The position numbers were made by a program, and so were the translations under genes. 23,026 nt of DNA, taken from the NCBI GenBank assembly GCA_965644315.1, contig CBFFRQ010000172.1:1-23026 (forward strand), read 5' to 3'. Numbering within the stretch: the first letter of the stretch is position 1; each line of letters starts with the position of its first letter. Below the pieces are notes generated by a model. It saw only the letters and a program-made list of their open reading frames with translations, did no database searches and had not been told where the DNA came from. The DNA is from Caecitellus pseudoparvulus (Eukaryota > Protista > Bigyra: Bicosoecida). Shown in pieces: positions 3 through 23,024 of this stretch.

Positions 3-3000
3 CACCCCCGGAGACAAGTTCACACTAGGGACCAATATTCGGGTTGCAATGGCGCCCCATGATGAGATGCAGCTTAAGTCTGCGCCAAAGTCGGCGTAAA
101 CACCCGCGGCGATGTTCAAGATGGTCGAGCCTTCAGATGCAACTGCCCCTGGAGCGAGTGGCAGAGTTCGACAAACGACAGCTTCCAACGCAGCAATGCC
201 AGAGGCGTCATCAAAGTGGCCAACCAGCGTGACGTTCAGCACGCCTTGCGGTGCTTCATGTGTCAAGGACACACTTGCACTTGCCTGCTCAGGAAAGGAT
301 GTGTCCACGCGAACACATGCAGCCGTTCCAGCCACAAACAGTCCGGCAGAGTTTGAAACGTTGAAATGTGGGCAGTACAGGCCATCTTCGTCGACAGGAG
401 TGCTGGAAAGCGAACCACTAGATCCCTGGATGAGGGCGTAAGCACTCGGCACGCTCGCCCAGGCCTCGCCATCTGATGTCAGCCATTCAATCTCGATGGA
501 ATTCAACGCGGAGTGTTCCTCAATGAAAGCCCCAGTCAACCAGGACATGGAAAGGGCTGTGTCTGAGGTGACTTCCTCTGAAATGCCGGGAATTGTGCCT
601 GCAAAGATGAGGCTGGCGTTCAAGACAGGAGGGGACCTGTCAACAGTGAATGGCCCATGAAAGCTACGAGTCTGCAGACCCGCGTGGTTTTCGGCAGTGG
701 CAGTCACAAACACTTCTTGGCCGTCGTTGGCAGCTGCAAGGCTTCCGAGGTTGACAGCTTGGGCAACGTCGTTACCGAGCCCAGTCGCCACATCACCCAA
801 TCCTGGGGAGCTTCCGACTTGGAAAGAGACGGATGCGAGACCGCTTTCGGGGTCTCGGAAGCCATCCAAGATCGCGAAGACTTCAGCAGTTGAGACCCAA
901 GAGATGCTATCCCACGCAACATCCGTGCTGGTCGCGCCAGAAGTAGGGACAGCCAGAGTCACTGTACCTGCCACAGGTGGGGTCGACTCCTTCGTGAGCG
1001 CGCCTGTTGCGACTGACTCCAGTCCAGCGGAATTCGAGCAATGTGCTTCCCACATCAACACAGAACCGTCTGGCACAAGCATACCTTGGTGCTTCAAAGA
1101 GACAGCATACGGTAAGTTGGAGAGCATGGCGCCCCACTCAGCCGCTGGCTCCAACGAGGCAGGACTCCGCCCCGCCAATACCGCGCAAGTGACTGACGTC
1201 TCATCCGAGACTGCAAGCTGGAGTGCGGGCATGCTGGCGTTGTGAAAGAACATACCAGAATCTGTTGTCGAGAGCAGTCCTGTGACATTCACTTGCACTA
1301 GCGGAGGGGTGACGTCCAGAAGAACGCCATCGCTGACGGACACTGCTGGGGTAAGGTCTCCGTACTCTGCGACTACTTTGGTGAACACCCGCCCTCCTCC
1401 TTGAAGGCTCAACGGTGTTGCTGCAACCCCATAAGCGTTGAACCTGGCATCTTGCAAGGGGAGCACGTCACATGCGCAGTCTGGGCCAAGCGCGGTGCTG
1501 CTGCACAGGCACCACTTGTAGGAGATCCGCGCTTGCGGAATCTCAGCGAGAGAGAAGGGCTCCCAGCTGGCATGGAATGCATCTGAAACAGGCAAGGCCT
1601 CGTTGTCGTGCATGTTCGCCCCATCAAATACAGTTCCAATCTGAATGGCTCGGTTGCGAACTGGAATGGCTGGCCCAGTGGCGAGCTGGGACTGCTGCCC
1701 CAGAGAGTTGGTGCACACTACGCTCACAGCCAACAGTTTGACGTCCCAGGTTGACACACCCGACCAAGAGGCTTCCATGGTTCCAAAAGAGGTGACACCG
1801 CTGCTCATGGGTGGCAGGTCTGGCAGAGCTTCATCGGCAGCTGAGCCATCGCCCACCCAAGCAGCATGGAACGTGGCACTCGTGATGCCGGACTCGGGGT
1901 CGGAGCACCCAGAGAAGCGTACAGAAAGAACCGCGCCGTCAACTTGAGCTGGGTACGTTGTCTGGCTCGCGGCGTTCTGTGGCAAGCGCACTGAGGCTTG
2001 CAGGGCAGAGACGGCAGATGGAACTACAACAGGGGGTGTGGTGTCAACTGTGACTCCGTCACTGCTGAACGTCGCAGCATTGCCTGCGAGGTCCTGCACA
2101 CGGAACGTTGCATACACAGTTCCTTCGGTCAAAGCTGCCTGGAGACTTCCGCGGCACACCAGGTTGCCAGCTTCGCGCTCAACTGCCGTGAAACTTTCAG
2201 AGGCCACGTCGGCCAGGCCTGGCAGAGAGCCAAAGTAGCACGACGCGTTGCCAACGCCAGATACTGTGTCCATGACCGAGACGAGGACAGCTGACATCTC
2301 CTGAAGGCTCACAACGCTTCGCAAGTCTTCTGCGGCATCGGCTCCATCCACCACCGCTTCTGCCACGGGCGGAGAGTCATCCAGGCCAAATGCCGAGCTG
2401 AAACCTTGCGATACCAGCCCGGCAGAGTTGGTTGCGCTCACTGCGATCCTAAACGTGCCAGCCGACGAGACTTCTAAGGCGGCACAGGAGACCTGTCCGG
2501 CTGGGAAAGTCCGGGACTCGACCTCCCAAGCGTCTCCAGTCCGGCGCTCGAGCCAAAAACGCTGCGACTCAATCTCCGACACGTCCTCTGTGCACGACCA
2601 ACAGAACTGTTGGAATCCCTGCTGAGTCACCCATGCGGCATTGGACGAGTCAGTTAGCTGCACTGAGGTGCAGATTGGTGGCGTGGAATCCACAGTCACA
2701 CCATCAGACATGACTTGAGTGGCAAGCCCCGCGGAGTTGATGGCCTTCACCTGCATCGCGTACTTGGTGGCGTCGGTGAGGCCTCCAGGCACCAATGTGG
2801 CCAGCACATAGTTCCCCAGGAGCACTGCAGGAAGCCATTGCCCGACTGGTTCAGGTGCTCCTGAAGCTGGGACGAGCACGGGCCGCATGAGCACTTCATC
2901 GATGCTTGTTTCACCGTCCACAAAGGACGCCGTGGCAGTCAGATGGGTGGCGTTGGAGGTGAACTGCACATCCTCAGCCCCTGCTCCATCCTGTGGCTCG

Positions 3001-6000
3001 AACAGCGACAGGGGGGGCGTCGAGTCCACGATGACGCCGTCTGAGGTGCAGACGCCGACGCTGCCCGCACCATTCGTGACAACGATCACCGTGTACAGCT
3101 TCTCACCAGAGGGCAGCAGCACCCCCTGCTCCATGAAGTGGGCAGCTTCCCGAGCACTGGCGGGAGCGTCTTGCAGAGGCAGGAAGTCATCTGCCCCTTG
3201 CAGTCGCCCGATGCCGTACTGCACACGCGCGACGCCGGACTCGGGGTCGGTAGCCGACCACTGCAACCAGGGCAGGAAGGAAGAGGTGAAGTCCTCGTCA
3301 ACGCCCTTCACAGGGCCGTCCCATGCGAAACACGAGGGGGGCGTGGTGTCCACACTCACCGGCACGGTGGATACTGCGTGGGACATGCCGATGCCGTTAA
3401 CGGCTCGCACCAGTCCGTACACTGTCTGCCCATGCGCCAGATCCAGCCCCACCATGGCGGCCTGGGTGGACAGCGTGCCGCGTGTGAAGAACACGATGTC
3501 AGCTGCTTCTGGCGTGGAGCCCAGCCCCACATCGTACCGCACAATGCCAGTCTGGTTGTCCGCGAAGCCCGCCCAGTGCAGGGTGAAGGTGGACGTGCTG
3601 GAGATGAAGGTGCCTGAGGCTGGTGCGGCACCTGCCAGACCCAGACGGGCCCAGGCAGCGCCATCCACAGGCCCCGTGTCGTCGATGAAAATACCGTTGC
3701 TCCAGACACTGGTGGCCTGGCCTGCCTCGTCCACGGCAGTGACACGCGTGAAGTATGTCTGCTGTGGAGTGAGCGGGTCGTCTTGCAGGTCCAGCACCGT
3801 CCACTCTAGCAGCCCGACACTGTGGTCGGGCACGACGTCACAGGGGCCGTCCGCGGCGGTGGCAGCGCAGACACGGAAGTCCACGATGGAACTCTCCAAG
3901 TCCAGGAAGTTGGCCCAGCTGATGACCAGCACCTCCGTCATGCTCTGTGCGACAGCGTCTGCGGTGCCAGGCATGCCGTCCGTCACAATGCCTGGCAGGG
4001 GGGGGCGGGTGTCAATGAGGAGCGTTGTGGACAAGTGCGTTGCAGTCCTCTGCAATGCCTCATTGTAGCACACCACTTGCGCATGCACGCGCCCTGCACC
4101 AGGTAGATTGTGACCAGCAAGAGACACCCAGTGCCTGGCTTCGTGCTTCGGGCCTGAACGTTGGGAAGCTGCCACGCTCGCACCAGATTCCAAGTCAAGC
4201 CCTGTGTTCTTCACATCTGTGACCACGACTGGACCAGGGGATGGTTCATGTAGCCATGAAGTCGCCCCTGATGAAGTGGTGAACTGCCCGGCGGGGATGA
4301 GAGCACGGTTGACAATGTCTGTGCCACCGGCGTAAGATCCAAGTGACAGCTGGCAAAGCAAGTTGCCAGATTCGGGCTCTGCCACGTGCCAAGAAAACAC
4401 AGCCACGTCTGATGAGCTTCCGATGACACCAGCACCAAGGCTGCTGTTCGTCGCCATGATGAGATCGGACACCTGCGGCGGTGTCACATCGACCAACACA
4501 CCATCGGACACGCTGCTACTCAGCGCGCCTGCACCGTTCCTCGCTTCAACATGGAACGAATAGCGCTTGCCATGCTCCAGCGTAGCTGGAATCAAGGCAG
4601 AGTACAGGGCTTGCCGTCGGACGGCTGGGATGGTGAAAACCTCAGAAACAGCTTGACCCGACGCCACATCAGAAACCCACACTGAGTATGACACGACATC
4701 CGATTCGGCATCGGCCGCGGGTTCCCACGAGCCAGCATACAGTGTGGACTGCCCCTGCACCCTTTCATTCGCGAGTGTCGCGTTTCCAGTCAGTGCAGCC
4801 AGACCCGGAGACGCAGGAGCGCCATCGACGACTGCTCCCATGTCTGGGGCGGTGGTATCGATAACAACCCCCGTCGTTGACCTCCATGTTGACACACCAG
4901 CCACATTCGTGGCTTTGATCGTGGTGAAGTATGTGGATCCATGGGCAAGCGCATGTGGAAGGTCTCCCCACGTTCGCTGCTGCACTGTTGCGTGCAGCCT
5001 CACAGGGCCCGCAACGTCGAAGAACGACGCAATATTCTCCACCCCAGCACAGGCACCGCTGTCGGAGAGCTGCGTGATAAGGTTCAAGCGGTGAGGATCC
5101 CGCGCCAGCAGGGCGGAGGGCAGGTCTCCACGCTCGAATGCCACGACATCTGCGCAAGCTTGCAGCGACTCATCAAAGGGCTTGGACCCGAGGAACACAT
5201 CCACGTGCGCGACCTCCGAGTGTGGTTCAAAGAAACCACTTTCCCAGCTAGATCGCAGGGAAGTTGTCGACTGCTGCGCTCGAATCGCAGTGGCCAGGGA
5301 GCACCCAGATGCCTGCACTCCACAAGAGAAGAATCGGTGCTGCCCGTCAGCCTGGGGCCCGGAGGGGTCGTACATGGTACCGTCATGCACTTGCCAGCGT
5401 TCACCACGTGCTTTATTGGCAACTCTAAGAGTGACAAATCCAGTGGTGTGGGCCGGCCAGTCGACGTTGCGCAGGACGGACTCCTGCTGCAACGCTTGAG
5501 GCAGTGGCGTCCAGTCCACCAAATCGGTGCCACCTGGGGACGTGCCGAAGCCTATCACGATGCTGTCCACGCCGCTCTCGGCATCCCATGACTGCCACAT
5601 AATGTGCAGCAAGTCAATGTCTGAGATGAATGCGGTCGTCGTCCGTGCCACTTGCGTTGCAAGCAAGGCAGGCTGGGGAAGGTCTCCAGGTGACGTGGAG
5701 GGCTGGCGCTCAACACGGTTGTAATCCACATTCACTTGGCGTGACGAAAGGCGCAGCGACTTCACCTCCGGGGGCGATGAGTCTACAACAAAGCCGTTTG
5801 AGAAGCTCTCACGAACCGCCCCAGCAGCGTTCTGAGAGATGATGCTCCACCTATACGACAGTCCATCTCGAAGGTGCAGGCTGGGAGGCAGGGCAGTTTC
5901 CCAAGCCCGTGCACTGCCAATGTAGGCATGCTCGCTGTTTCCCTCACCAGAGCCTGGGAGCATCATCCGGCCTGTTTGCACCTCCTGCACATTCACCCAG

Positions 6001-6830
6001 AAGTGCTCTGTTGGCGTTCCCTCCGCATCATCAAAAGGGCCAAACGAGATGCTGAGGCGCTCAGCCGACGGCCAGTGCGAAACATCTTCCTCCACACCCC
6101 ATCCAAACTTACCCCCACTCTCACTGATGAAGCCCGCCCAGGAGCCAGTCGTGTCAATAAAGATGGGGTGGCTGGTGTACCACCCCCGCAAGCCAATGTG
6201 GTTGGCTGTGCGGATGTTTACCCAGTAATACTTGCCATGTTGCAAGTCCAAGCCGCCCGCTTCAGCGTAGTACCAGGCAGGTGATTTCTCCTCCATGAAG
6301 TCAGCATATCCAACATCAGACCACGGGAGCACATCATCCTTCCCTGGGCCCGAACCGACTGCGAACTCGACCAAAGCTATGCGGCTTCCTTCTGCAAGCT
6401 CTTGCACCTTGAACCGCACGAGAAGAACCTCCGTGGCATTCGTGACCTGGAAGTCGCCATACCGGATGTAAGCTTGTGCGCCCGTGTCCCACACTTCCAA
6501 ATCTCGCACCTCAGGTCCAGTTCGATCGCAGGAGAATCGCGTCGTAGTGCCGGAACGCAAACCTGCAGTGTTGGTTGCAAACACGGACGCGAATGCCGGG
6601 CGTGACTCGCCTGGGCAGTCGACGGAACTAAACGTGAAGGAAGAAAAGTCCATACCCGTGTAGTACTCGCCAATATCCTCGCGCATGGGAGCAGTGCCAA
6701 GGGCCACTGAAAACTCTCGAACATAGCTCTCCTGGTCCACGAAGCCTCCCCACTCTGTCTTCACTGTCACTGCGTCTTGCTGCTCGACGTCCACGACAGC
6801 CGTGCTCGTTAGAGCGGCTGTTGAGTCTGG
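3..6830 (-). repeat. Tandem array of >=19 divergent FN3/Ig-like beta-sandwich repeats (about 100-170 aa each) within the CDS
   Basis: Recurring protein consensus D-x-[ST]-P-P ... W-x-G-F-x-D-x-E-S-G-[IV] ... G-[ST]-x-P-G-x-x-D-[VI] ... L-x-H-G-x-x-Y ... A-x-N-x-A-G-L ... S-D-G-V-x-V. Boundary motifs lie at about 6826, 6526, 6154, 5782 (VDSSPP), 5368, 4858, 4489 (VDVTPP), 4012, 3682, 3349 (VDTTPP), 3025 (VDSTPP), 2689 (VDSTPP), 2380, 2044 (VDTTPP), ~1655 (degenerate), 1315, 988, 640 and 304. That is 18 complete units plus one cut by the window edge. Confidence 0.88.
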
Positions 6831-9800
6831 AGGAAGGCGACACACTTTGAAGAGAGGAATGACGTGCCAATCATCACCGAAGGGCTTGTACTTTGCAATT
6901 GTGAACCGGTGCTCCTTGCACTTTACGATGCGGCAGTATGGTACCCGGATGGAGAACCACCGGCCCAACTTGATCTTGCGGCAGCAGTAGCAACGAATGC
7001 ACAATCTGAACGCATAGTAAAACTCGACCGCAATGCTGGGATACTGCAGGGCCAGATCCATCTGCAGACAAAGGTCGACCTTCCCTGCTGGGTTGATCTG
7101 CAGCGAAGCTGTTGGCACCACTGCGAGGGAAAACAGCCTCACCCGCGCCTGCACTCCTGCCACCCCAATACCAAAGTCAATCTCAATGCCAGCCGCAAAG
7201 TATGGAGTCGCAGACGGGATGAGTGATACAGCGAGGAGCTTCTCCTTAAGCAACAGTGACACATCCAGATCCACCTGGACATCCACTCCTGCTGAGATGG
7301 ACAGGAACAACGGCACAATTGGAGGGCCAAGAGGGAACCTTAGTTTAAAGAACACAAAACTCTGGGACATTAGAGTGTTCTTTGCACTGATGGCAGAATC
7401 AAACTTCGGATCACGCGCGCCGACAGCTTGCAGGACACGCGAGGAGCCGCGACGAACGACCTGGTGCGTGTCTGCAACGCGAACTCCAGATCGCCGGGAA
7501 GAGTGGTGAACGACAAGGCTTGGCGTGGACAAATGCGCATTTCGCACACGTAGCTTGCGACCATCTACTGTGCGAATCGTCACTGCAGCTCGGGGCAGCT
7601 GGTGCGCGGCAAGCCCAGCCGCTTGCGTCAGAGACCGGCCATGAGCTGCATCACGTGCAAGCTCATCCAACGTTATGGGCTCTGCTGCATCTTCCACCTC
7701 TGCTCCCACACTGCCCAAGCTCCGGCGCGTTTCACAGAGCGGATCACCTTCGATCGGCAGTAGGCATCGAGGGCCAACGTACGAATGCAGGGAGAACGGC
7801 GGAGTAGGCTGGCGCACCTTCAGATACAGCACATTTTCGGTAAACTGAGGGTTTACGTTGCGTACAGTGGGCAAGAGGAACTTGTACACCGTGTCATCAG
7901 TCAATGCTCCAATGCGTTGCACCTGGTCAAAGTTGGCGTTCGCACCCGTAGACGTGACCATTGCGGCGAACGTCACATCAGTACCATCGTACAGGGCAAG
8001 AGACTCGACACCTGCTGGGACACGCATTTTCAGCGTAGCTGTGCCCAAAGACGCGCCGTCGTCTTCTTGGTTCTGGCCCGCACTGGAGTCCTGCCCGCGC
8101 CGCTTTCGCAGGGAAGCAGGCGCTTTGCCGCTGCGGAGCACCCACTGCCCCACCGGGAAATCCTCAAGCTCAGCCTTCGTCTTCATACGGCTGAGAACAC
8201 TGGGGTCTGGAAGAGATAGATCTGAACTCATGTCTGATGGCAAGAGCTGGTGGAAATCCAGGGTGCAGTGTGAGCCCGCACGGGTGTATGTGCAGCGAGT
8301 CAGCGCCATGTTCACGAAGCCAAGCTGCTTGAACAGCATCACACCCTTCGCCCGAGCTCCAGATTGAACGATAAGGTTCGGGGCCAAGACGACTTGGCCG
8401 TCCACCTCGTAGGTGAGTCCAAGTGTGGCAGCTCTTGGCAATCCATCGAAACCCAGCGCAAAGCCCACAGTCCACCCCATGTTGCACTGCAGCCAGGCGT
8501 TGTGCCGATCTCCTTCAGCTTCATCAGCGTCTTCTGCGCCGACGGAAAATGGCCCGTAGGGACCCTGTGCACAGAAATCCGCACTGTACTCGCCGTCCAC
8601 AGTGTGGTGCTCCGCCACACGGCGAGAGTAGGAGTACATCAGGGGAGTCGAGGGCGTGGACCTTGCCAGAGGCTCGTCAGTAGAGGCAGGCCCACCTGCC
8701 CCAGCAGGAGGCAGCCATCCTGAAAGTTTGTTCAAAAAGCCACCGACCTGTGGGCTTGTCTGACTCTCCCCTGGTTCTTCCGCTGGGGATGCGGGATCGC
8801 CTGGTTCATAATACTCGCCCACCCACAGCGTTCCGTGGAAGCCGAAGGCTGTGCGATCATAGAAAAGAGCATTCGCCTGTACATCAACTTCGAACGGGCC
8901 ATGCGCTGCCATGAGTTCGACCACAGGGTCGGAGTTTGACAAGAGCTGCTCCGCAACTTTCCAATCGAAGGCCATGATGTGGTTTTGCCGGGCACTTGCT
9001 GGGATGCTGTCTTGCACGTGATCGATTGCTGTCTCGTTGACAGCATCAGAGCACACCCACAGCAGGCCGTGATCGCGGTCCAGGGCCAGGTCTGCCACAG
9101 AGCCGAAGTACGGCGTGCCGTCAGGCAGCTGCAGGGAGAATGTCTTCAAGATCACTTCGTCGTCGTTCATGACGACGATAATGCTTGGCGTGGCAGCGTT
9201 CTTGCCTGTCCCGTGCATACTGACTGCCAGTCGGCGGTAGTCGAGGGCCTCAACCCCCTGCGGCATCCAATCCTCAACCAGCCCAGGGAGAGTCACGTGC
9301 CAGTTGTCACCCCGGCAAGGGTACCCTCTGATCTGGCATGATCCGAATGCGGGTGGGAAAGTTTGGTACCAAAAATGGGTGTACTTGAGGGCCATGAGTG
9401 ACGTGAACACAGCTGAGCGACGAGGAACTACGTGGACACACGGGTCCCCTGCATCACAGGGCGGCTTCAGATCAGCAGGATCAATAACACCGTTCGGCGT
9501 CCCACGCCCCAGCACCCGCCGGGATTGCTCTGCAAAGTCTGCTATGCCGTCAGCGATGTCCTCCACAGTGTCACGGGCAGGGGAAATGTCGTTCACTACA
9601 TCTTGAACGCCATGCAGTACATCCAAGGCCAGCTGTGGTACTTTCACGAACTGATCCCTGGCCAGGAGCACGAGCTTCTCAGCTGTGCCGCGGATGTAGG
9701 AGACGACACTGTTGAGCGAGTCAACGACAGTTGTGCGGAATGTAACGAAGAATTCCAACGCCATTCGCAATGGGGACAGAACAAAGGCTGCGACTTCTTG

Positions 9801-12800
9801 AATCCTGTCCGCCACCCACTGACCAGGGTTAAACGCTTGGATGGCGGCCACAGCAGAGCGAACGCCTCTTGAGATTGTGCCAAGGAATCCGGCCACTCCT
9901 TGCACGAAGTCAGCTGCTCGGCGAATCCCACCAACAATAGTATCAGCGAAGTCAAGAGCAGCACCTGAGACGACGGCCAGGAAGTTTCCGCTTGCCAGTG
10001 CCCGAGCACCGCTACCCGGGCCTTGGAGTGTGAACAGAGCAAGTGCTGATTGCACTGGCTCCTTGGCCGCTGAAATCAACGACGTCGCCCGGTTGAGGCT
10101 GGACAAAAGGCCAGATCCTGAAGAATCCATGTGCGCCTTGAATGTGCCCACTGCTCGGACGCCTTCTTGCAGTGCTCGAGATTCGACCAAGACAGTTTGC
10201 AAGGTGTCTTTCAGAAGGTCGCGGATGCACGGAGAGCCGGGGACACACTCCTGCAAGTCGAAGGAAGCCACGAGCGCAGGCAAACGCTGGCGCAGTGCAC
10301 GGAGCGCAGCCACGCTGTCGCTTGACGAGGCCAAACCAGCCTTGAGAGCCTTCGTTGTCGCAAAGAGTGGCGCTGCAGACGCAGCTTCGTCCGCGAGCTC
10401 AGTGGGAAGTCCAGCCAAGGCAACGACAGCGTCACCCACGTCGACCAAGGTGGACTTCACGACAGCCCTGGAAGCGATAAACTCTATCGCACTGTCAGCC
10501 CCAGCACGGATGCGCTGTAGCGTTTGCGCAGCGTTGGCAACAAGACTGAATACGCTGCTGAACCCAGACAAAATGGAGCGAATGACTTTCTCTGCCAGTT
10601 GACTAGCCAAGGCCTTGCCGCCATCCACCAGGCGAAGCAGCGTATCTGGGACGAAGTTAGCAAACTCATCAGCTCTACTGCGAAGGATGGACGTCCAACT
10701 GCTCAATAGGCCATCAAGTTTCTCCAACAGCAGGGTCACAATGTCCCCAAGAGCACCGACAAGCCCCCCAGAGCTCACGATCTTTTGGGCCACAGTCTGA
10801 ATCTTCAGGGCAAAGGACACCACGTTCTGGGCCGCGGTGCCGACTTTGAACAGCGCGCCGCCTCCGCCCCTCATGATGCTTCCGATGGGGCCAGGGGTGG
10901 TCTGTCCCATGCTGAGCACAGTGCGGCCGACTTTGGTCACAGTCTTGATGATTGGTGACGCCTTGCTGGCGATCTTGTCTGTCACATTTGCCACTACGCC
11001 AACAACATGTTCCACTTTCTGCATGGTGGGGCTGCCGCTCACAAGCACATCCAAGCGCTGCAGCAACTGGCCCGATAAACTGCGGAGCTGCTGCATGCCC
11101 TGGTCCACTACACCGTCCACTTCTTCCACCAACCTCGCCGCCAGCTCTTGCAGCACAACCCTCAGGTCCTCTGCGGCGTTTGCAAGCAGGTCTCCAACAT
11201 TGTCCACCATGCGGTTGATCTGCAGCATGACCTTTTGGGTAAGGAAGTCTTCAATTTCCTGGGAACTATCCAACACGTCTAGAACCTGGCCTGCCATGTC
11301 CAGATAGCCCTGGGCTTCGTCGACCACCCGGGCAATGGCAGCGTCGGCAGCTGCCCCAATTCCGTTCAGGGAGCCAGTCCACGTCGCAACACTGGTTTGC
11401 AGGGATGGGAGAGAGCCACCCAGAGCCTGACCAAGCAACGTAAGTGTGGGTTCAGTGACCAGGACAGCATCGGCCACTCGCAGAAGGGGCCCAGGAGGAG
11501 GAAGCCGCTCATCAATGCTCTGAATGAGAGCATCCAGCACTTTGACCAGGTCAGTTTTCAGTACACGGGTTGCGTTGGCGTTGTCCGAGAGAACGCGCTT
11601 CACGGCAGACTTGCCTGCTGCCAGCTGCGTGCTCACAGGAGCGCCAATAGACCCTAGCCTGCCAACTTGCACCATGTCCTCCGAGGCTTCCTTCATAGAC
11701 AGTACGACGCGCAGCACAGCAGCGGTACGGGAGCTTGGCTGGAATGCAGGTGATGCCTTGAGCGAGGCAAGTTGACCAAGGAGAACTGGCAGGAGCGCGG
11801 TGTGGCCAGCCGACAGCTCCAACACGCTATCCATCAGTGCCGCCAAGTCTTCATGAGCGGCAGCTAGAAGCACTTTCGATTCTTCAGGTGACAAAGCCAA
11901 CGAGCCATCGCTGTCCAGGAGGCTCTGCAAGTCCACGATGCGGTCTGCGAAGCCTCGCAGCTGTCGTTGGTCTCCAGCACTCACCCCGGGTGTGCCAGCT
12001 GCTGCTCGAGCTGCGAGCTCCAGTGCCTCAAGGTCTAACCCTGGCGAAGAGGCCATGCTGTCAGCGGAAGCAGACTCAATGGTACCCACAAGGGTACCCG
12101 CTGCACCGTCCAATGCAGCATTCCAAGCTGCAAGGCGCTCAGAAGTGCTGTCTTGTCGACGTTTTAGACTTTGGAGGCCAGAGGCAACGGAGCTCAACGC
12201 AAGTGACGCTGGGAGTACGTTGGACGTGATGGTCCCAGCCCTGCCTAGTATTTGGCTTGTAAGTGCTCCGATACGTAAAGCCTGCAGTTCAAGTTCAACC
12301 TGGTCAAACTGCTCTGCACCTATGCCAAGCCCCCTTGCAAGCGGTCTCACGCTTTGAATGGAGCGCTGGGCAGCATCAGTTGCCCCAGCAAGACGGCGCA
12401 GTCGGCTCTCAGGCATCCAAGCCAGTGGAACTACAGTGCGACCGACCGTTTCTGCCACCAAACGAAGACTTTCACTCGCACTTGTGAGTCTGCTGCGAGC
12501 CGGCGTGCTTTCCGGCGCTTGCTGTGCAGCAGAGTGCAGCGCACCCCCGAATAACAGGAGAGCCTTGGCTTGGGGTGCGGCCACGGCGTCGACAGGGGCT
12601 GGGACGCTTGCCGCAAGCAACGTTGTCAGGACCGTGATTCTGCTGGCTGGGGAGGTGGTCGCGGATGTCTCAAGAAGGTCAACAGACGAGGCCTGATGTG
12701 CATGTCGCGCCACAGCTCCGGCCAACGCCTGGGTGACGCGGAGCGATTCTCCAGCATGGTGCAGCACAATGCCCGCGCCCACCGCTGCAAGAGCATCGCG

Positions 12801-15800
12801 AATGCCGTCACGGTCAGGGTATGCACCTGAGCTTGCCACAAGGCTGATGAGTCCAGCATCAGCTGTCAAGTCGTCGCATCCGGACAAGCCATGCACAAGG
12901 TCTAAATCAACTTCTGACATCGCGAGGCTGGCGCTGGACCCCATGCCTTGACGACCGTGAAGTGTGCCCTTTGCCCATAGCGAGAAGATCTGGCTTGCAA
13001 GGGTGCCCGCCGTGGCACTGGCTCCCGCAAGTTGGGCACTGGAGAGAGTCCACGTGCAAGGTTGGGAGCAGATCTCAGTAGAGGAAGGCAGTCTTGCGAG
13101 TGCATCCAACAACGCAGGGTATGCTGAAGTAGTGCCATGAGCCACGAGGTTGCCCAGTTCTGCAAGTGCACTGCACGACCCGACGTCCCTGTTAAAGTTG
13201 AGAGCAGACCTTTTCCAAACTGCCTCACGCGATACTGAGCCTAGGTTTTGAGAGTGTAGCTGCCGTGCCAACAACGCTGCCGCCTGAGAGCTTCTGAAGT
13301 GGAGTGAAGCCGCAGCAGTGTGAACAGACGAGGCCTCCAGCTGCATCCTGCAACGGCGGGAGGCATTCATGACGGATTCTGCTTCGCGCACCAGGCTGAA
13401 GCCTGCTGCACCCCGCTCAATTGCTGTCTGCAGCGATTCCGCGAGAGCATGAGTAGTCTCACAAATGCTGCACTCAAGTGGGCCAGACACACACAGGGAG
13501 TTCAAAGCAGCTGCCTGCTCTGCTGTGGCATTCAAGAAAGACGCAGCATTAGCTTCAAGGGAAACCGCCTGCTCTGCATGCTGCTGTGCCAACGACGCGA
13601 GCGTTTGGGCCAGCAGCAGAGAGAGTTCCTGGGTTTCCTGGTGATCAGACAAGGCATCCTTCAATGTGTGCGCTAGGAGCAGGTCCTGCTGTGCCGTCTG
13701 CAGCGAGCTGAACGTGCTGGCTGCAGTTTGGATGGCTGCCATGGCAAGGTCGGCGTTTGGAACCACTGCCGTCGATGCGCCCATGAGTAGCAAGGCAGCT
13801 GCTTCCTGTTCGGCATTTGTGCCACTGGCAAAGCCTTGCGCGGGCAGGTTCAGCACAGTAGGAGCAAATGCAGCCAAGGCTGACACAAGGCTAAGGCTTG
13901 TGTTTTTAGTCAACGCCCGAGTACACCGAGCTGCCGCATCAATGACAGGCTGGGGCAACTCCGTTGTGTTGTCGCTGGCCGACAGCAGCCCATCACAAGC
14001 AGATCTCACAGAGGATACCAAAGAAATACCGAGGCGCGCGTGAAGCAGTGACGTAGCCTCAGACACTGATGACACCAGTGCTGTTTCAGTCTGAGCAGCA
14101 GCGCCAGAAAGCTCTTCCAGTAGTTGCTGCACCTGATCCAGCACAGGACTGTCTCCAGCAGGCTGCATGGAACCGCCCCCCTGCAGGCTCGCAAAGGACT
14201 GGCGCAAGATATCCATAGAAGCTGCGTGCCCACCTGCCGCTCGTTCATGCGCTTGGGCCAACGCAGTGACAAGGACCCACGCGCCGGCGGATGCACTGGA
14301 AGACGGCGTACCAGCCGAAGACAGAGCGGAAACTAATTGTTGCCGAAGTACAGGTGCAGGCAGGCACTGCGGGCATGGGATGCCGTGGCTAGCCAGGACG
14401 ATCGACGCCGATGCCTGCTGGTCGGCAAGGAATGCTGACATGATGCGGATGCCCTGGTGTACCTGTGCAGCCAGCACTGGCGCGGCAGTGCCCCACTGGT
14501 CAACACACCTGGCTTGCTTCCAGACAGACCCTTGGAGGGCTGACACTGCAGCCATCTCGTCCGAGTCAATGACCATGTGTTGTGATGCTACGGTCGCCAG
14601 GCCACACAGCTCGCTCGATGGCGCAGCAAAGGCTTGCAGCCCAGCAAGTCTGTGCAGGGGCTCTGCCGGGGGAAGAATAGCCTCAATGGAAACCGCACCC
14701 TTGACCGGCAAGGCAGACCATGTAGATCGCACTGCAGCTTGGAAAGCAGTTCTGGAGAAAGGGGTTTGGTGCAACGCCGAACGGGCGGCGGTGGCAACTG
14801 CCACAGACATAGACAAGGGAAGTTGTTGCAAGGCAGCGACAAGGAAGGCTGTGTCGCGACACATGGAAGGCAAATCAGCGTGGGCCGGATTGGCGGTAGG
14901 TTCGAAAACTCGGCTGCACAACTGTGTGTGTGCAGCTCCCAAGGTCTGGACATAGGACACGGGTAATGCAAGAAGCGACTTGGAGTGGGACTGCAGGGTT
15001 TCCAACGCAGTCACAAGGGTCACCAACGGCTGTTGCACCTGCTCAGCTTCAGAGTTGAACGCCACTCCCTGTAGCGCATTCAGAATGGACTCAGCCAGGA
15101 CCAACATGCCGTGGACAGACCAAGACTGTTCATCCAATTCTGAGGTGAGGGCTTCGTACACCGCATTTGGGAGGGCAACAGGGTCTCCTGCCCAAGTTGC
15201 AGCGACCGCTCCAGAGACTTTCGTTGCTGCTACCAGCTCACCGGCTTGCAGCACCCAGGCAGCTACATTTGAAGTTGTTGGGCATGCTGTGGTTCCGGTG
15301 CATAAGCTTGCCAGCCTGGTACACGTGCTGAATGAAAGAGAGTCACTAGCGACCGCGCGGGCAGGGGCAAGTGCGAACGCGTCCACACTCCTTGCAGCTG
15401 CGAGCATAGCAGGAAAGATGCGTGCCTTTTGACCCAAAGAGTAGCTAGCAACCGCAGCGTGGATCGCCTGCAACCCAGCTGTCGTGTTGGACGGCACTTG
15501 CGGGAGTGAGGGGGACACTGCCCATGACGGCTGAGCCTGGCCGAAGCCGGGGCCTGTGGGTTCCACGGACACTTCCAGTCCCAGCAAAGGGGCCACCTGC
15601 TGCAGCAGCCCCTTTCGCAGGTCAACTGACACATCAAACACTTGGCACGAATCTGATACACAAATTTCCACCGTCTCAAGAACTGCACCAGAGCCCGTGG
15701 CCAGCATTTCACGGGAACCGCCACGGACAGAGCGGAACACCTCCCCAAGTGTGACGCACTCTACGCACATCACATGCAACGTAGTGGTTGAAGGGCACAC

Positions 15801-18800
15801 AAAGCCGTTGCAAGGCGCGTGCAAACCAAAGACTGGGCCAAGGCTGCCCTGTAAATGACCATGGGAGTGCTTAGGCAGAACAACAGTTCGAGATGGGGTG
15901 GACGCGGATGGACTGGCAGTCAGCAGCCCTGCAGCCTGAGCAGTTCCAAGCGACATATGCAGAAGCTGGGAAACATTGACCCCAACTGCATACTGTACCC
16001 CGCTTAGTTGCGCCTGCAGGTGTGCCCAAGGGACGAACAAGTCAGATTCACTTGCCATGCTCACTTGCGCTATGCTACTTGCAACGGTCTGCAGTAAGTG
16101 AACGTCGGCTGCAGCGATTCCAAGCATGGGTGATGTCGCACCACCATGCAGCTGCAATGTGCCTCTCGCGAAAGAATTCAAACTCTGTGCCATGCCCAAA
16201 GCATCGTCCAATGTAGCCGCGAGACTCGAGGCTGTGACGGGTCGAACTCTGATGCCAGCGGGGTCAACGGTGGTGGTTGCTCGCGCAGCTTGTCGAACAC
16301 GAGATGCCAGTGGCAACACAGCAACGTGATCCACCATTGCTACAGACACAGCTTGAAAAGTCTCTGATACCCCTGCAAACCATCTGAGCACCAAGAAATC
16401 CAATGCCATCTCAAGGGTGGGGCGGTCACACGTGGAGCAGGAGGTTATGAGCAACTGAATGGCTTCGGCTGCCACGGGCAGTCCCGAGCCGGACTCCACA
16501 GCTTGTGACACCTGCCGACGCAATAGAGACTGATGCCCCGGAGACACTGGCAGGTCATCCATGGCATCGGCCGCCCAGGCTGCGAGAGGCAGCAAGCATG
16601 CGCTTGCCTTGACAAGGGGCGGGGCCGCTGTGAGCCAAGACTTGAGTTGGGCATCAACATCAGGAGCGCTTATGGCACTTGTTGGTGCCGTCGGATCTGC
16701 TAGCGTCGCAAATAGCGCCGTGCTCAGGCTCTCCAAAGAGGGAAGGCCGGCGGCCACTGAGGCTGCACCACCTGGCAGTCCCTTCCCATCTGGCAACACC
16801 CGCGAAGTAGAGCAGGGGGAGAGTGCTGAGAGGGCCTGCAAGGCAACCAGGACTTTAGCTTGCTGTTCTGATGTGGAAAGCCGGGCAACCTTCTGCCCCA
16901 ACGATGCGGCCTCGCACGAAACACCTGCTACAGCGTGCACCTGCCCGCTCTGCAGGTGACCCTCAGCTCGAGAGAGCAGCAATGCAGCCCGAACTAAGGT
17001 GCTCTTGCAGCTGCCGTCTACGCACGCGGATGCTGAAAGTGGTGAATCTAAAAGGGATGCAAGTGCCGCAGAAATGTGCAAAGATGCGCCAGCAGCCTTG
17101 GACAGGGCAGCCGTTGTCAGGAAAGTTGCCGGGAAGGCAGAAGCACATGTGAGGCCGTTCACAAGTCTTAATAGTTTCCCTACTTTCTGAACATCACAAG
17201 ATGCGCCATGGCCATTGACAGCGCCACACTCCGCCGCGCCCTTTGACACTTCTGCCTGTACGGAAAAAGGGGGCACCGTGTCGAAGCTTCGAGACACGTT
17301 CATGGCCGCCCCCGAGACAACCTCACACTGCATGGAATCAGTGGGAAATTCTTGAGCAGACCACAGGAGTTCTGTCGAGTTAACAATGCTGCAAGCATCA
17401 CCCAGCTGCAGTTTTCGCAACGAATTCGTGAGGCTCTCACGGCTCGCTGATGGCAGACACTCCGCTTCGTTACGTATCAAGTCCCCAAGAAATGCAAGCG
17501 CAGCTGATTGAAGGCTTGTTGTCGGTTGTGTGCCGTGCACCAGTGCATGGAAGGCTGTGGCCCCAGCTAGCTGCAGAGCTGCCTCCTCGGCGAACGGCGA
17601 GGCGCCCACAAGGGGACGAGTCACAGCCGCTCCCTGCATCGTCATTGCTGGCAAGGCGTACAAAGAAAGAACATCGTCTGATGGCCCCGAGCAGCCGGAC
17701 GCCGCCAAGTGAGCCAGGAAGGCTGCCAAGCTCGCCTGCTGGGCTGACCTAGGACACGGCGACCCATCACAAAAAGACACCTCGCTCTGAAGACGCAACA
17801 GTTCGGGGACAGCTGGGTTGTGACCGCGCGTAACTGCAGACATGGCAGCCATGCATGTGCCTCCCTGGGGCAAGTGCAAGCTAGCATCTGCTGCAGTAGA
17901 GGACAATGCATGCAGGCGAATGCCAACGCCAAACAGCACATTAATACTGCCATCCGTGGACAACAGGTCCTCCGCCACCGCCTTCACAGCCCGTGAAGTC
18001 TGGGGTGACAGGCCTGCCGCCCAAGCAATTATGTCACTCGGTAGGGAGGCCCCTCCGAACACAGTAGCAAGATCAGTTAAGGCTGCTGCAGCATTAACAG
18101 CAGCTTTTCCTGCCTTTTGGAGGGGAAGGTAAGCCGCCTGTTGCAGGACACTCTCGCTCACGCCAGCGGAGCAAGGCCCCTCGCACTGAACAACCACGCC
18201 AATCTCTAGTTGGGCAGCTGAAAGCAAACTCACAGAGGTATCAAACAGAGGAATTAAGCTTGGAACTCCTTCAGGCATTGTTTCTGCTGCCGCGCTTTGG
18301 GACAGGCCAACGAGTCCTCGGACTGCCGCAGTAAGCGACCCATGCAGGCTGGACATGCGCTGATTGATGTCAGCGGATGACAGTGCTTGAGCAGATTCCT
18401 TGACAAATGGCTGGCGAGCGGCTGATATCAATAGGTCGCCAAAACTTTGGGCAGCTGTTGAAAACTCCACTGGCCCAACTGGACCACGGGTGACGGCACC
18501 AGCGAGCGAGTGTGCCACGCTATCAGCCCCAACAGCTGCGCCCAACTCGACAAGGCCCTCTGCCACTGCTAAACTTGATTGTGTCAGCCATGTGTCTGAA
18601 AGGGCTGTCAGGGACATGTTGCCCCCGACTGTCCCACCACGAAGGGCCTTCAGCACCAAGTCGCCCGCAGGCACGCTGTGCGACGTGAGGCCGGCACGTG
18701 TCACGTCTACATCAAGGCTTGACAAGCTCAGCAGGCGCTTCTGAGCAGCCTCCGCTGCCGCCAATGTTTGCGTGGAACGATCCAGGTTAAGGGCGGACCG

Positions 18801-21800
18801 GGCTGCGACCAAATCTGCGACTGTGTGCAGTGCCCGTGCGGACACCAGCCCCTCTGTCGAAAGTGAAGCAGCTTCGTTCCACCACGCTTCAACGCGGAAG
18901 GCGTCCATACCATCTGATGCAGCAGAAGCGAGGGCATCTATTGCAACAGCCGACGCATTGGTCGCGATGCAGGACAGTAACGAGTCACAGGATGCTGCTC
19001 CTGGCCAAACTCTGTCGACCTCTGCCCACACAGAGGCCAGTGAGGACTGCACACGCTCAGGCAAGCTTGCGACTCTGTCATCTGTCTGAGCTGTGTGCAG
19101 GAGCAAAGCAAGTCTTTCCCCAGAGCCAGGGATGGACACGTCGGTGCCATGTGCAGCCAGATCTTGCACGACAGCACTGCCATGTACTTCCAGAACGGAG
19201 AGGAGCCAAACGTTCTCACGAACCGCATGGAGCGCCCCCAGAGACGTTTGGTTCACGATGCCTGCCGCGGACTCCACCGCTACCTGCAATGCATCCAAAG
19301 ATGCCACGGGTACTTCTGTGAGTGCTGAGGATGACGCAAGCAGTGGTGAACTGCTTGCTGTGTGGAGGGTTGACAGTGCCTTGTAGGCATCATGCACGTG
19401 CCAGTAGTCCATGCCGAAGCAAGCATCCTCAGCTGTACAGGGAGAAAGAGGGGCCAACACGCCTCCAAGAGGGGGGGCGCTCTGTGACCAAGCTGCAATC
19501 TGAGACAACGCTCCGGATGGAAGAGCGTCAAGCTTCCAGTCTGACAGCCAGCTTTCGAGGGCACTTTCCACAACATGCAGGTGCCCCTCTGCAAGCAAGT
19601 CCTGCAGGGAACCCCGCTGGCCATCATCGGCATTAAACACCGCGGACATGGCCAGAACAAGGTGTTGCTGCTCTGTGGCCATAGAGCAGTAGTGCAGCAA
19701 GTTCGCCAGTTGAGTCCTGAAAGCACAAGCAGCTACGGCAAGGTCAAAAGGGCTGACAGGTTCGGAGGAGCAGGCCGCCAACGTCATGATGTCTGCCTCA
19801 CTTGTCTCCGCCACCGAGCACACTGACTGCGCCAACTCCGAAAGACGGGTGAAGTTTGCCTCGGTCACATTTAGCTGTGCTCGAAGCTGTGCCTGGGCGC
19901 TGCTCAGAGCACTATCAATAGCCACAGCCACATCTATTGCTTCATCAGCTGCCACTGACTCAGCGGCCAACGCGCTCCAGGACGCCTGGAACGCTGACAT
20001 GCTTCCTCCCACACTGGGCAGCGAAATAACCGTTGAGAGCCCGAACAGCGCACTATCCAAAAATGCTGTCCCCACTGCAGTCTCAAAGGCTGTCCATGCG
20101 TCGGTTGCGTTCGCATCCGACACTTCTTTAGCGCGCAGCAGTGCTTCGGACCCGAACTGGGTCAGCGTAATGGTTGGCGAAAGGACTGAAGCAAGTGCAG
20201 GCAATTCTTCATCGGACGGAGAAAATCCCGCCTGGAAAAGTGCGGCATCATTCACGGAATTCTGACCCCAATCGGAGGGCGCGGTGTGGTCAACCGAGCC
20301 GTCAACCTGGACGGACAAAGCACCAAGTCCTCCTGCGTAGAGACAAGCCAGAATGGAACAAAAACCATTGCTCGGAAAGCTCTCCTTGCTGCAATGGCCA
20401 GCCCAGGGCGAAAGGCTTGCAGCAGCTGGGCGCAAGAGAGTGACGTTGCCCGTGCTCCATGACTCGTGAGCAGTTTTGACAGCGGTATAGTGCTCAGCGG
20501 CAGCAATGACATGGGAGTGTGCGTCTTCAAGGATTGGAGAGGAGGCACCAGCACATAGTAGGAGAGTATCTTCCATGCTGATCGGTGAGCCCGACCAGTT
20601 TCCAGAGCTGTGGGCGAGCATAGCCGTCGAGCGATCTATCCAGCTTGAGCCTGACACAGACAAAGACTTCAAGGACGCAGAATGGGCCTGTTTCAGTGGG
20701 GCAAAGGATGACAGCAAGGAGGGTGGGATGTGACTTGCTGCGAGTGCTGCACCTGCCAAAGTTGGAGCGGATTCCGTAGCTGTCATCCAAGAAGCCAGAT
20801 GCGACACGAAGGAAAGTAGGCTTCCTTGCGAGACGTCAGCAGAAACAAAAGGGAGAGCCACCTCAAGTGCAGATTGCAGCGTACTGGCCACTAGGGAGCA
20901 CCCAGGTACACCAGCTACCGTAGCCAGTGCAGCCTCGCACGAAAGTGCGCTCGCAATTACAGTTTCGTTGGCGGCCGAGTTCAGCGCCAAGCATGGCGCA
21001 AGCAAGGTACCGCCTGAACCGCTCCCCGCCAGAGCAAGCCCGCACTGGGCGGCAGCATCGGAGGTTCCAGGTATTGTCGTGTTCAGTGCACCCGAGAAAC
21101 CAACTTCCCAAGCCAAGTCAAGGATGTCATCTGGCAAGGGGCTGCTGTCGTTCACCCAGCGCAGCAAAGCGTGGGGGGCAAACTGGCCGGCGCTGGCAAA
21201 AGTGGCAATTGTTTGCTCAACTGTGAGATCTGGGTCATTCAGAGCATCCGCTTCGTCATTCCCGTCCAGAACAAGGCGAAGCCCAACCAGGGAAGCATGG
21301 GCTGTGAACAGCAGACGTGCTGCGGAGCCGCAGGCCGGCACCACGCAGGTAGATTCCAAGGCTTGGGCCAGTTGCCAGGCATCACCTGGCGCTCTGGCAA
21401 ACTTTTGGAACCGACTCTCGGTAGTTACAGCCTTTGCCATAGCTTCCTGTTCGGCACTAGTCCAGCTCTCAGGCAGCAGCTCAAGCGCTTGCGTGCAGAC
21501 AACCCTTGCAGCGCTCATCAGATCCTGAGCGCGAGGGCCGACTCGGGAAGCCGCTTGAGCAGCTCCTTCAATGAGGCGCGACACAGCACCAGGCACGGCA
21601 CGCAAGACAGCTTCTCCAGAAGCCACGGCCACTTCGGCAGACTCCATGGCTGCCGCAAGTGCTGTGGAAGAGCTCGATACAGGCAAGGCGTTCAAAAGAG
21701 CAGTTTGAAAGGCAAGGAACAACACAGCCCTTGTTTCGTTCTGCGCGCTAGTACCCTGTGCAAAATCTTCAAAGGCAGCGCCGCCCACAGAAGCTGCGGC

Positions 21801-23024
21801 AATGCTGTGCCAATGACCAGGTAACGAAAGAGCAGGAGGCGACTCCAACACTTGCTGGCAAGCAGATTGCAAAGCTTCAGCACTCGCAAGAATGCTAGCA
21901 TCAAGCATAGCGGGCCAGCTTGCGACCCGTGCTCGCCATGCTTCTTCTGCGAGGGAGGCCACGTCTTGGCCAAGCTCCAAGCGACTCGACGCAAGCGCGC
22001 CAAGCAACGCCTGCAGCGAACCTGAGATAGCCGATGCCGGGTCCAAGAGTGACTCGTGTGGCAAACCTCCGAAATATGCCGACCCTGAGTACTGCTGCTG
22101 GGCAGACTCAGCTGCAGCTTCAGCGACGAGCACGTCAGACTCCACATCAAGCTCTGAAGCAGCCCACACGACCAGCAAACTCGTCGTCTCAATGAACGAA
22201 GTCAAGTTTGCCACAGCCTCACCGAGTTGGTGCCTGGCTGTGTTGAAGTCAGACACAGAAGCAGGGTCTGAGCTTGCGCTGCGGTGCAATGAAGACCTCA
22301 GCGCCAGGCCTGCAGCCTCCAGCTCAGTCAGAGCCGCAGAAACGGTTGAGTTCAGGCCGACCGCAAGGTCAGCCAGCGTCGCACTATGCTTGCGCGCAGC
22401 ATCGATAACTAGTGCTTCGAAAGGATTTGATGCAACGTCATCTGCAGACCCCAGCTGTAGGGACTCTGAGAAAGACTCCAGTTTAGCCACAGCAGCCTCA
22501 ATTTCAGGCCGGACCCGCTCAAAACGAGACGTCATGAACGACACGTCAAGGTTGTCTTGAATGACATCCACAGCAGCTGATGTTTCAGGGCCGAGACCGC
22601 CCTGCAGAAGCGCTGCAAACGGGGCAAGAGCGCCACCAGATCCGGACACGACGCTGTCGATGAGGAAGATTGTATCACGCACTTTCTGCGCGTCAGCCAC
22701 AATCCCGTCAACGAATGAGCTTCCCTTTGCAAGGACAGCATCAACCCTATCCAGAACATCTAGCACGTGATCTCCATAGCCAGCGATGCGTTCATACCAG
22801 TTGTTCACGTTGTCCAGGTGGCCCTGGATCATCTCGATCACGGGGGGATCGGCGATGTACTCCAGCTTCTCCTGCACCGCTGCCAGCTGGCCATCCACGG
22901 CATCAATGAACTCTTGAACCCGGAGGAACTCAAGTGCTTGGTCCAGATAGGCATTGACAATGTCCAGCACGCCTTGGGTGTCCAGCAGTGCATCGACGAA
23001 GCCTTGCACAGCTTCGATGTACTC
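3..23024 (-). CDS. Giant multidomain secreted/surface protein, partial at both ends (>7,674 aa): helical region + beta-propeller + LLTP/MTP-like beta-sheet + FN3-like repeat array
   Basis: The minus-strand frame whose codons have a lowest coordinate divisible by 3 reads EYIEAVQGFVDALLDTQGVLDIVNAYLDQ... at 23024 and ...ILVPSVNLSPGV at 3. I saw no stop in the hand-translated parts (1-9840, 10200-11700, 19560-23024, samples elsewhere). Every minus-strand ORF in the supplied track is in one of the other two frames. A stop in this frame would have produced a reported ORF, so the frame is stop-free across the window. The translation has coherent domain motifs throughout. Confidence 0.96.
6840..7380 (-). 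other. Long-stranded antiparallel beta-sheet domain, candidate MTP/vitellogenin/apoB (LLTP) lipid-binding sheet
   Basis: Translation FVFFKLRFPLGPPIVPLFLSISAGVDVQVDLDVSLLLKEKLLAVSLIPSATPYFAAGIEIDFGIGVAGVQARVRLFSLAVVPTASLQINPAGKVDLCLQMDLALQYP...IPLFKVC shows alternating hydrophobic strands. IEID..AGV (7155-7187) and CLQMD (7056-7070) match, in order and spacing, ITVD..AGL and CMQMD of the human MTP C-terminal sheet as I recall it. Confidence 0.6.
7381..7740 (-). other. Arg-rich, probably disordered linker / propeptide-like segment
   Basis: LCETRRSLGSVGAEVEDAAEPITLDELARDAAHGRSLTQAAG...DGRKLRVRN...SRRSGVRV...VRRGSSRVLQAVG, with several R-x-L and dibasic motifs lying between two globular domains. 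Confidence 0.55.
7860..9300 (-). other. Beta-propeller domain with long inserted loops
   Basis: Blade-like motifs occur in order: VTLPGLVEDWMPQGVEALD (from 9296), PSIIVVMND..ILKTFSLQLPDGTPYFGSVADLALD...LLWVC, FEVDVQANALFYD...TLWVGEYY (8808-8828), GWTVGFAL, GARAKGVMLF, MRVPAGVESLALYDG (~8000-8020), VTSTGA, DDTVYKF. Confidence 0.7.
9500..12850 (-). other. Cys-poor amphipathic alpha-helical region (apolipoprotein/helical-bundle-like)
   Basis: Examples are AIARVVDEAQGYLDMAGQVLDVLDSSQEIEDFLTQKVMLQINRMVDNVGDLLANAAEDLRVVLQELAARLVEEVDGVVDQ and TFRTTVVDSLNSVVSYIRGTAEKLVLLARDQF. Both show 3-4 hydrophobic periodicity with short Pro/Gly breaks. The upper boundary is approximate. Confidence 0.7.
12850..21900 (-). 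other. About 3,000-aa Ala/Leu/Ser-rich, mostly helical region with dispersed cysteines and many N-glycosylation sequons; no family recognised
   Basis: Samples are LAQALESTCVVPACGSAARLLF, AQLRAQLNVTEANFTRLSELAQSVCSVAETSEADIMTLAACSSEPVSPFDLAVAACAFRTQLANLLHYCS and ANETVIASALSCEAALATVAGVPGCSLVASTL. Only partly translated by hand. Confidence 0.55.
21900..23024 (-). other. Acidic amphipathic helical region (apolipoprotein-like), continues upstream of the window
   Basis: EYIEAVQGFVDALLDTQGVLDIVNAYLDQALEFLRVQEFIDAVDGQLAAVQEKLEYIADPPVIEMIQGHLDNVNNWYERIAGYGDHVLDVLDRVDAVLAKG. No Cys in this stretch. Confidence 0.65.

Follow-up and report, generated by a model that had tools for sequence, protein, structure and literature searches.

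The 23,026-nucleotide (nt) stretch of DNA analysed here (the window) is filled by a single minus-strand open reading frame (ORF). A domain of this frame at residues 5209-5398 had been likened in a first-pass annotation to the C-terminal lipid-binding sheet of MTP, a large lipid transfer protein (LLTP). The flagged stretch holds up as a genuine domain, all-beta and conserved. On balance, we lean towards the view that it is the equivalent of the A-sheet in a very divergent, LLTP-derived head, which a giant surface protein would carry on its FN3 stalk. The earlier proposal of an LLTP with a giant insertion is favored by the apparent domain order in short-form relatives and by the LLTP structures retrieved with Foldseek, but no profile similarity was found and the signals are sub-threshold. 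On this reading we infer homology to the LLTP sheets, a partner sheet upstream, an LLTP N-terminus in this gene, and lipid binding.

The reading frame and its conserved domain

The ORF runs from 23024 to 3 on the minus strand (7,674 codons, 0 stops) and is open at both ends. The regions of the encoded protein, given in amino acids (aa), and two Cys of the flagged domain are listed below with the evidence for each; P numbers denote members of the protein family, and A1 is the alignment of its 23 domain sequences.

11325..23024, minus strand: aa 1-3900, orphan Ala/Leu/Ser-rich region, presumably helical, 5' end open (no stop, no Pfam family, no repeats)
9525..11324, minus strand: aa 3901-4500, conserved, strongly amphipathic helical region (BLASTP to P0002 and P0019, hydrophobic moment)
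7461..9524, minus strand: aa 4501-5188, conserved beta-rich globular region (profile of 10 members)
6831..7400, minus strand: aa 5209-5398, flagged domain, candidate LLTP A-sheet equivalent (AlphaFold2, Foldseek, strand amphipathicity)
7068..7070, minus strand: Cys5319 of CLQMD, invariant, on the fifth long strand of the model (A1 column C131, strand E128-139)
6840..6842, minus strand: Cys5395 of IPLFKVC, near-invariant, directly before the PxDxTPP start of the FN3-like array (A1 column C207)
3..6830, minus strand: aa 5399-7674, array of about 20 FN3/Ig-like units, 3' end open (Pfam fn3, boundary spacing)

The motifs on which the comparison with MTP had been built were all found in place and with the spacing described. 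GIEIDFGIGVAGVQ occupies aa 5279-5292 (window 7190-7149, minus strand), CLQMD follows after exactly 26 residues at aa 5319-5323 (7070-7056), and a basic, Cys-rich stretch separates CLQMD from IPLFKVC at aa 5389-5395 (6860-6840). With aa 5189-5415 as the query, HMMER was run in full against 1.84 billion representative proteins at a cut-off of E ≤ 1e-3 and recovered the domain (about 190 aa) in 23 protein clusters. Three close clusters are 100%, 59%, and 43% identical to the flagged domain and the remaining ones 24-32%, most of the latter belonging to proteins 2,400-7,900 aa long. The Cys of CLQMD, two Pro, and one Gly are invariant in A1, while the Cys at the 'RLC' and 'KVC' positions are near-invariant, the latter (C207) being kept in at least 90% of the sequences. 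Eight Cys are conserved in most family members, and the domain closes with a conserved IC..P.D.TPP junction to the first FN3-like unit. The family is small and occurs in dinoflagellates and in other GC-rich and GC-poor protist genomes; the GC content of its loci ranges from 50% to 69%. It might be argued that the motifs match by chance in an unstructured or artefactual frame, as HMMER found no similarity to MTP. This is refuted by an ORF open for 23 kb, by 23 clusters spanning 100% to 24% identity, and by a confident fold, and the probability of a chance match is negligible.

The window protein and P0005 lack the same two of the family Cys, one before strand 1 (7335-7337) and one in 'LCIxDK' (about 7185-7187; LLLKEK here). 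Their joint loss suggests that the two are disulfide partners that were lost together in these Symbiodinium copies. P0005 (CAE7856105.1, Symbiodinium sp. KB8) is a paralogue; the identity is 59% within the domain and 48% across 886 aa. Its NCBI name, 'rad50, partial', looks like a mis-annotation arising from coiled-coil-like helices.

Predicted fold and N-terminal modules of the relatives

The AlphaFold2 model of the flagged domain, based on the 23-sequence alignment, had a mean predicted local distance difference test score (pLDDT) of 86 and a predicted template modelling (TM) score (pTM) of 0.72. It shows an all-beta fold in which about six long antiparallel strands (20-25 residues) meander and two short ones come after them. 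In the modelled segment, one face of residues 51-70 is hydrophobic, LLIAVVVLVL, and lies opposite FSSGDQDDSL, while residues 128-139 have VLLMLL opposite DCQDAQ. In MTP, the six antiparallel strands of the A-sheet have twice the length of those in the six-stranded C-sheet, and Cys827, followed by Met828, lies on strand beta5 of the A-sheet and forms a disulfide with Cys878 near the C-terminus (PMC6717300). The domain is similar to this sheet of the MTP large subunit (6I7S) in having six long antiparallel strands, a hydrophobic face, and a Cys on the fifth strand with another Cys later. In the model, the fifth long strand carries the invariant Cys5319, and the near-invariant Cys5395 is 76 residues further on. 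The analogy suggests that Cys5319-Cys5395 is a predicted counterpart of the Cys827-Cys878 disulfide. As to the MTP motif used in the first-pass annotation, its substance (Cys827-Met828, beta5, disulfide to Cys878) agrees with the published description (PMC6717300), whereas its exact strings are unconfirmed.

The domain model was compared with 350,542 PDB chains by Foldseek. The only matches with a probability of at least 0.6 were three LLTP structures: MTP (6i7s chains G and H; probability 1.00, E 2.8e-3, 164-168 columns, TMq 0.28), apoB100 beta/alpha1 (9bd1; probability 0.69, TMq 0.31), and lipovitellin (1lsh; probability 0.60, TMq 0.29). When the same model was compared with a viral structure library as a control, the top probability was 0.23. 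The lowest E-values (1.4e-3 to 1e-2) were obtained for pore-state C9/C8/C7, perforin, and perforin-2. These matches, together with the long amphipathic strands, would fit a domain that provides pore-forming or membrane-inserting hairpins of the MACPF/CDC, gasdermin, or aerolysin type, which unfurl into a target membrane. However, they had TM scores of 0.07-0.12, root-mean-square deviations (rmsd) of 35-40 Å, and probabilities of at most 0.23, so that hairpin length was matched and not the fold. Pfam gave no MACPF, aerolysin, or gasdermin match anywhere in the window protein (7,674 aa) or its relatives, and unfurling is hard to reconcile with a meandering sheet that the conserved Cys are predicted to staple by disulfides. 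Pore formation is therefore very unlikely. The TULIP/Takeout super-roll (about 200 aa) was rejected as a candidate fold, since 3e8t, 3h4z, and 9hae gave TM scores of only 0.12-0.14 and probabilities of at most 0.25.

The first-pass annotation had predicted a signal peptide and a Vitellogenin_N module upstream of the sheet. Three relatives, P0002, P0018, and P0019, have models that reach far enough upstream, and all three are short forms. Window aa 3905-7495 are colinear with P0002 1480-4714 (BLASTP E 8e-15 and 1e-102) through the helices, beta-rich region, sheet, and FN3 array, and P0019 (6,006 aa) is likewise colinear with the window from about aa 3885 on (E 1e-11 and 1e-105). The N-terminus of P0002 is signal-peptide-like, as judged by eye. 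P0002:36-330 matches positions 81-145 (barrel part) of the Pfam family Vitellogenin_N (PF01347) with an E-value of 1.6e-4 and 20.8 bits, and P0019 residues 280-393 match positions 398-519 (alpha part) with an E-value of 2.2e-3 and 17.1 bits. Both scores are below the gathering score of 24 bits; the two matches fall in the right order, barrel and then alpha. Since Vitellogenin_N was predicted in advance, the per-family chance is the E-value divided by 24,736 models, or about 1e-8 to 1e-7. In addition, P0019 matches HEAT_2 (E 1.5e-5) and P0018 matches HEAT (E 8.8e-4), and P0018 has no Pfam Vitellogenin_N match. A motif, PF..Q..G....L..ED..L.V..LK+G.L.ALQ followed by EETD.SG.Y, is common to P0002 and P0018; the gene model of P0019 starts inside it and keeps the second half only. 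This motif resembles the conserved NIKRGI.S.LQ block of LLTP barrels. A beta segment of about 120 aa is found just before the helical region in all three relatives, and it forms six short strands in a low-confidence AlphaFold model (P0002:36-1110). These relatives would resemble MTP in their putative order of barrel, alpha-superhelix, short sheet, and long sheet, and apoB100 and vitellogenin in a candidate N-terminal Vitellogenin_N-type module, whose scores lie below the gathering threshold.

The case against an LLTP origin and the proposed architecture

A number of results weigh against the assignment of the domain to an LLTP-derived head. On the structural side, Foldseek gave nothing at E ≤ 1e-3, the TM scores of the LLTP matches were poor (0.28-0.31, with rmsd of 13-18 Å), and the Foldseek output came without the aligned MTP residues. 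The domain matched no Pfam family at E ≤ 10, nor did that of any of the 23 members, and neither phmmer nor the A1 profile found any PDB chain at E ≤ 10, those of MTP and lipovitellin included. The resemblance to MTP at the motif level has no statistical support of its own, because phmmer and hmmsearch were blank even at this cut-off. A profile similarity to LLTP sheets, which the earlier proposal led one to expect, was therefore not recovered by HMMER. The structural comparison supported that proposal in part, giving a confident long-strand fold with the LLTPs on top by probability, but at E > 1e-3 and TM 0.28-0.31.

The upstream sequences add further difficulties. The AlphaFold model of P0002:36-1110, based on three sequences, had a pLDDT of 35 and is unreliable; Foldseek matched it to generic HEAT/ARM repeats only, and profiles of the relatives' N-termini found no LLTP chain in the PDB. 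A word-indexed homologue search with P0002:1-1100 found nothing, a blank that is weak owing to the length and word filters of the search. Pfam and local searches of the 5,188 residues upstream of the domain in the window revealed nothing LLTP-like and no short sheet. Similarly, P0001, a long form like the window protein, has no Vitellogenin_N in its 4,600 upstream residues. In four metagenomic family loci (L002-L005), the 10 kb upstream of the sheet is one open helical ORF without Vitellogenin_N, with about 3,300 residues covered in L002, L003, and L005. A local search of P0001 and of the upstream ORFs of the loci found no short-sheet-like segment and no LLTP N-terminus. The start of the window gene lies beyond the window edge, as the ORF runs off at 23024. 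Because the LLTP-like N-terminal module is found only in the three short-form members, it is a prediction for the window gene. Of the upstream features predicted earlier, Vitellogenin_N is seen below threshold in P0002 and P0019 and a signal-like start in P0002, but aa 1-5500 of the window protein have no Vitellogenin_N match. All the LLTP signals are below accepted thresholds (Pfam 17-21 bits against 24; Foldseek E > 1e-3).

The long amphipathic sheet could also resemble the LLTP sheets by convergence. The domain would then be a structural neck, in which a disulfide-braced long sheet joins the beta-rich head to the FN3 stalk and the Vitellogenin_N-like module is an unrelated addition. This agrees with the position of the domain, which always has the beta-rich region on one side and the PxDxTPP that opens the FN3 array on the other, and with the Cys-rich knot in which it closes. 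The TM scores of only 0.28-0.31 to the LLTPs, with no match at E ≤ 1e-3 and no profile similarity, also favor it, as do the long-form members, whose available sequence has no LLTP N-terminus. However, a neck does not account for the fact that three LLTP structures are the only Foldseek matches at 0.6 or above, or for the independent matches of the same proteins to two ordered parts of Vitellogenin_N, and it has no obvious need for a hydrophobic face of 70 Å. We consider this explanation less likely than an LLTP-derived head, but it is the main rival to it.

If the domain does belong to an LLTP-derived head, the window would encode the middle of a giant secreted surface protein, probably of type I and membrane-anchored, with the LLTP-derived head distal. 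Judging from the short forms, such a protein would begin with a signal-peptide-like start, a Vitellogenin_N-like beta-barrel, an alpha-superhelix, and a short sheet of about six strands. These may be followed by an insertion of amphipathic helices and the beta-rich region, the flagged domain, and a long FN3-like stalk, with a transmembrane helix and a tail in several members including P0002. The LLTP A-sheet would have its counterpart in the domain at aa 5209-5398, with six long strands and one hydrophobic face, braced by disulfides between conserved Cys. The domain might act with the short sheet and the alpha-superhelix to enclose or cover a hydrophobic cargo, the hydrophobic face of the long strands contacting either the lipid or a partner sheet that encloses it. 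The interposed amphipathic helices may extend the lipid-contacting surface, as in apoB.

Such a protein would differ from the known systems in several respects. In contrast to MTP, the presumed short sheet and the flagged sheet would be separated by helices and a beta-rich domain, which amount to about 1,500 aa in the short forms and to more than 5,000 aa in this gene. No sequence or profile similarity to MTP was found, the TM score is 0.28, and more than 2,000 aa of FN3-like repeats come after the sheet, with a membrane anchor in the relatives. MTP itself is a soluble 894-aa protein of the endoplasmic reticulum that is paired with PDI. The similarities to apoB100, vitellogenin, and lipovitellin (9BD1, 1LSH) include giant size, amphipathic helices with beta-sheets, and Foldseek probabilities of 0.60-0.69. 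However, these are secreted soluble lipoproteins of animals, whereas the protein described here belongs to a dinoflagellate, is apparently tethered by its stalk and a transmembrane helix, and is without a von Willebrand D domain. It is also similar to the giant FN3/Ig-repeat surface adhesins of protists and bacteria, with units of about 110 aa, DxTPP boundaries, and a single-pass anchor in the relatives. In contrast to those adhesins, its head is not a known adhesin domain, and it combines a beta-rich region, a long sheet, and thousands of helical residues.

In the literature, LLTPs are regarded as an innovation of animals that is linked to the formation of yolk and lipoproteins (for example PMC1783640). 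Our survey of the literature on LLTPs and Vitellogenin_N in protists and algae found no protist LLTP and no such architecture. What would be new, if the LLTP reading holds, is an LLTP-type module in protists that is membrane-tethered and interrupted by some 1,500 to more than 5,000 inserted residues. We tentatively raise the possibility that the family represents an LLTP lineage outside animals, in which symbiotic dinoflagellates and other protists would display on their surface a membrane-tethered protein of apoB size that captures lipid. The lipid cavity of this protein would be formed from sheets split by thousands of helical residues, and it may mediate lipid or sterol uptake from host or prey, or lipid-surface recognition. 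If true, the origin of the LLTP fold would be pushed back or a transfer between lineages revealed, and a lipid cavity would be seen to tolerate the insertion of thousands of residues. Coral-symbiont biology would gain a candidate for lipid or sterol exchange, or for surface recognition, at the host-symbiont interface.

Neighbouring regions and genomic context

The beta-rich region directly precedes the sheet in every family member with upstream sequence, according to a profile of 10 members. Because the profile finds it before the sheet in all such members, it can be regarded as forming a fixed unit with the sheet and the FN3 array. This region had been called a propeller; a conserved beta-rich globular region at aa 4501-5188 is confirmed, but a propeller fold is not established. 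It has no Pfam match and no sequence match in the PDB by phmmer or profile.

The helical region at aa 3901-4500 has a mean helical hydrophobic moment of 0.40, compared with about 0.26 elsewhere. It aligns with P0002 1480-2305 (BLASTP E 8e-15) and P0019 905-1630 (E 1e-11), and sub-threshold Pfam matches to Apolipoprotein A1/A4/E and ApoLp-III were found in the equivalent part of P0019. In aa 1-3900, Ala, Leu, and Ser make up 43% of the residues, and there are 64 Cys and 23 N-x-S/T sequons. No Pfam family, internal repeats, or detectable relatives, even among family members, were found for these residues. A word-indexed homologue search with window aa 1-1500 also found nothing, with a blank that is weak for the same filter-related reason as for P0002. 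The claim of more than 5,000 aa of amphipathic helices holds strongly for aa 3901-4500 but only modestly for aa 1-3900, as judged from composition and hydrophobic moment. The N-terminal helical regions of the family members are equally unalike. From these sequences, the helical linkers of the family appear to evolve very fast, and they vary in length. Positions 139-202 of Pfam DUF7217 matched below threshold in the helical regions of P0019:687-750 (E 9.5e-4) and P0001:4032-4095 (E 1.3e-4); the equivalent region of the window has no DUF7217 match.

In the FN3-like array, D-x-[ST]-P-P boundaries mark off about 20 units, each of 103-125 aa. The Pfam fn3 match in the array scored 41.2 bits, above the gathering score of 25 (E 2e-10), and bears out the FN3 stalk that had been proposed after the sheet. 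The array also matches Big_13 (27.8 bits, cut-off 27) and Ig_J_second. These FN3/Ig families of the C-terminal array were the only Pfam matches at E ≤ 10 in all 7,674 aa. A single C-terminal transmembrane helix was found in P0002, P0003, P0014, and P0015, which suggests that these are type I surface proteins carrying the head at the distal end. In P0002, a complete ORF of 7,640 aa, the helix is located at residue 7363 and is followed by a cytoplasmic tail.

PDI is the obligate partner of MTP. A PDI-family gene (Thioredoxin and Thioredox_PDIA6_C) is located on the opposite strand about 100 nt downstream of a family member at one locus (L007:17796-18848, ENA ERZ27316688). The family member at this locus comprises P0006 and a further 2,059 aa that contain PKD. 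Only one such case was seen, and the proximity is most likely a coincidence.

No signs of introns were observed over the 23-kb stop-free minus-strand frame of the window; Symbiodinium genomes are usually described as intron-rich. At L006:10833-10972 (Logan SRR30952582, 69% GC), a short intron-like stretch splits P0018 inside the sheet domain, and the frame resumes past it with the Cys-rich end and DRTPP. The intron-like stretch, unlike the intron-free window, indicates that this contig is genomic and comes from a very GC-rich eukaryote. The GC content across the whole window is 56-65%, and the many ORFs of 100-400 aa in its other frames are probably shadows of the GC-rich coding frame.

Window 5366-11213 aligns with the Symbiodinium sp. 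KB8 contig CAJNDU010014807.1 (L001:1-5850) at 96.5% DNA identity, with 200 mismatches and 1 gap. P0004 (CAE7529749.1), which is annotated on this contig, is 100% identical to the window protein across the flagged domain. These identities assign the window to a Symbiodinium-type dinoflagellate. The gene model of P0004 drops 54 codons as an intron. The model is probably wrong at this point, because the same frame is open in the window.

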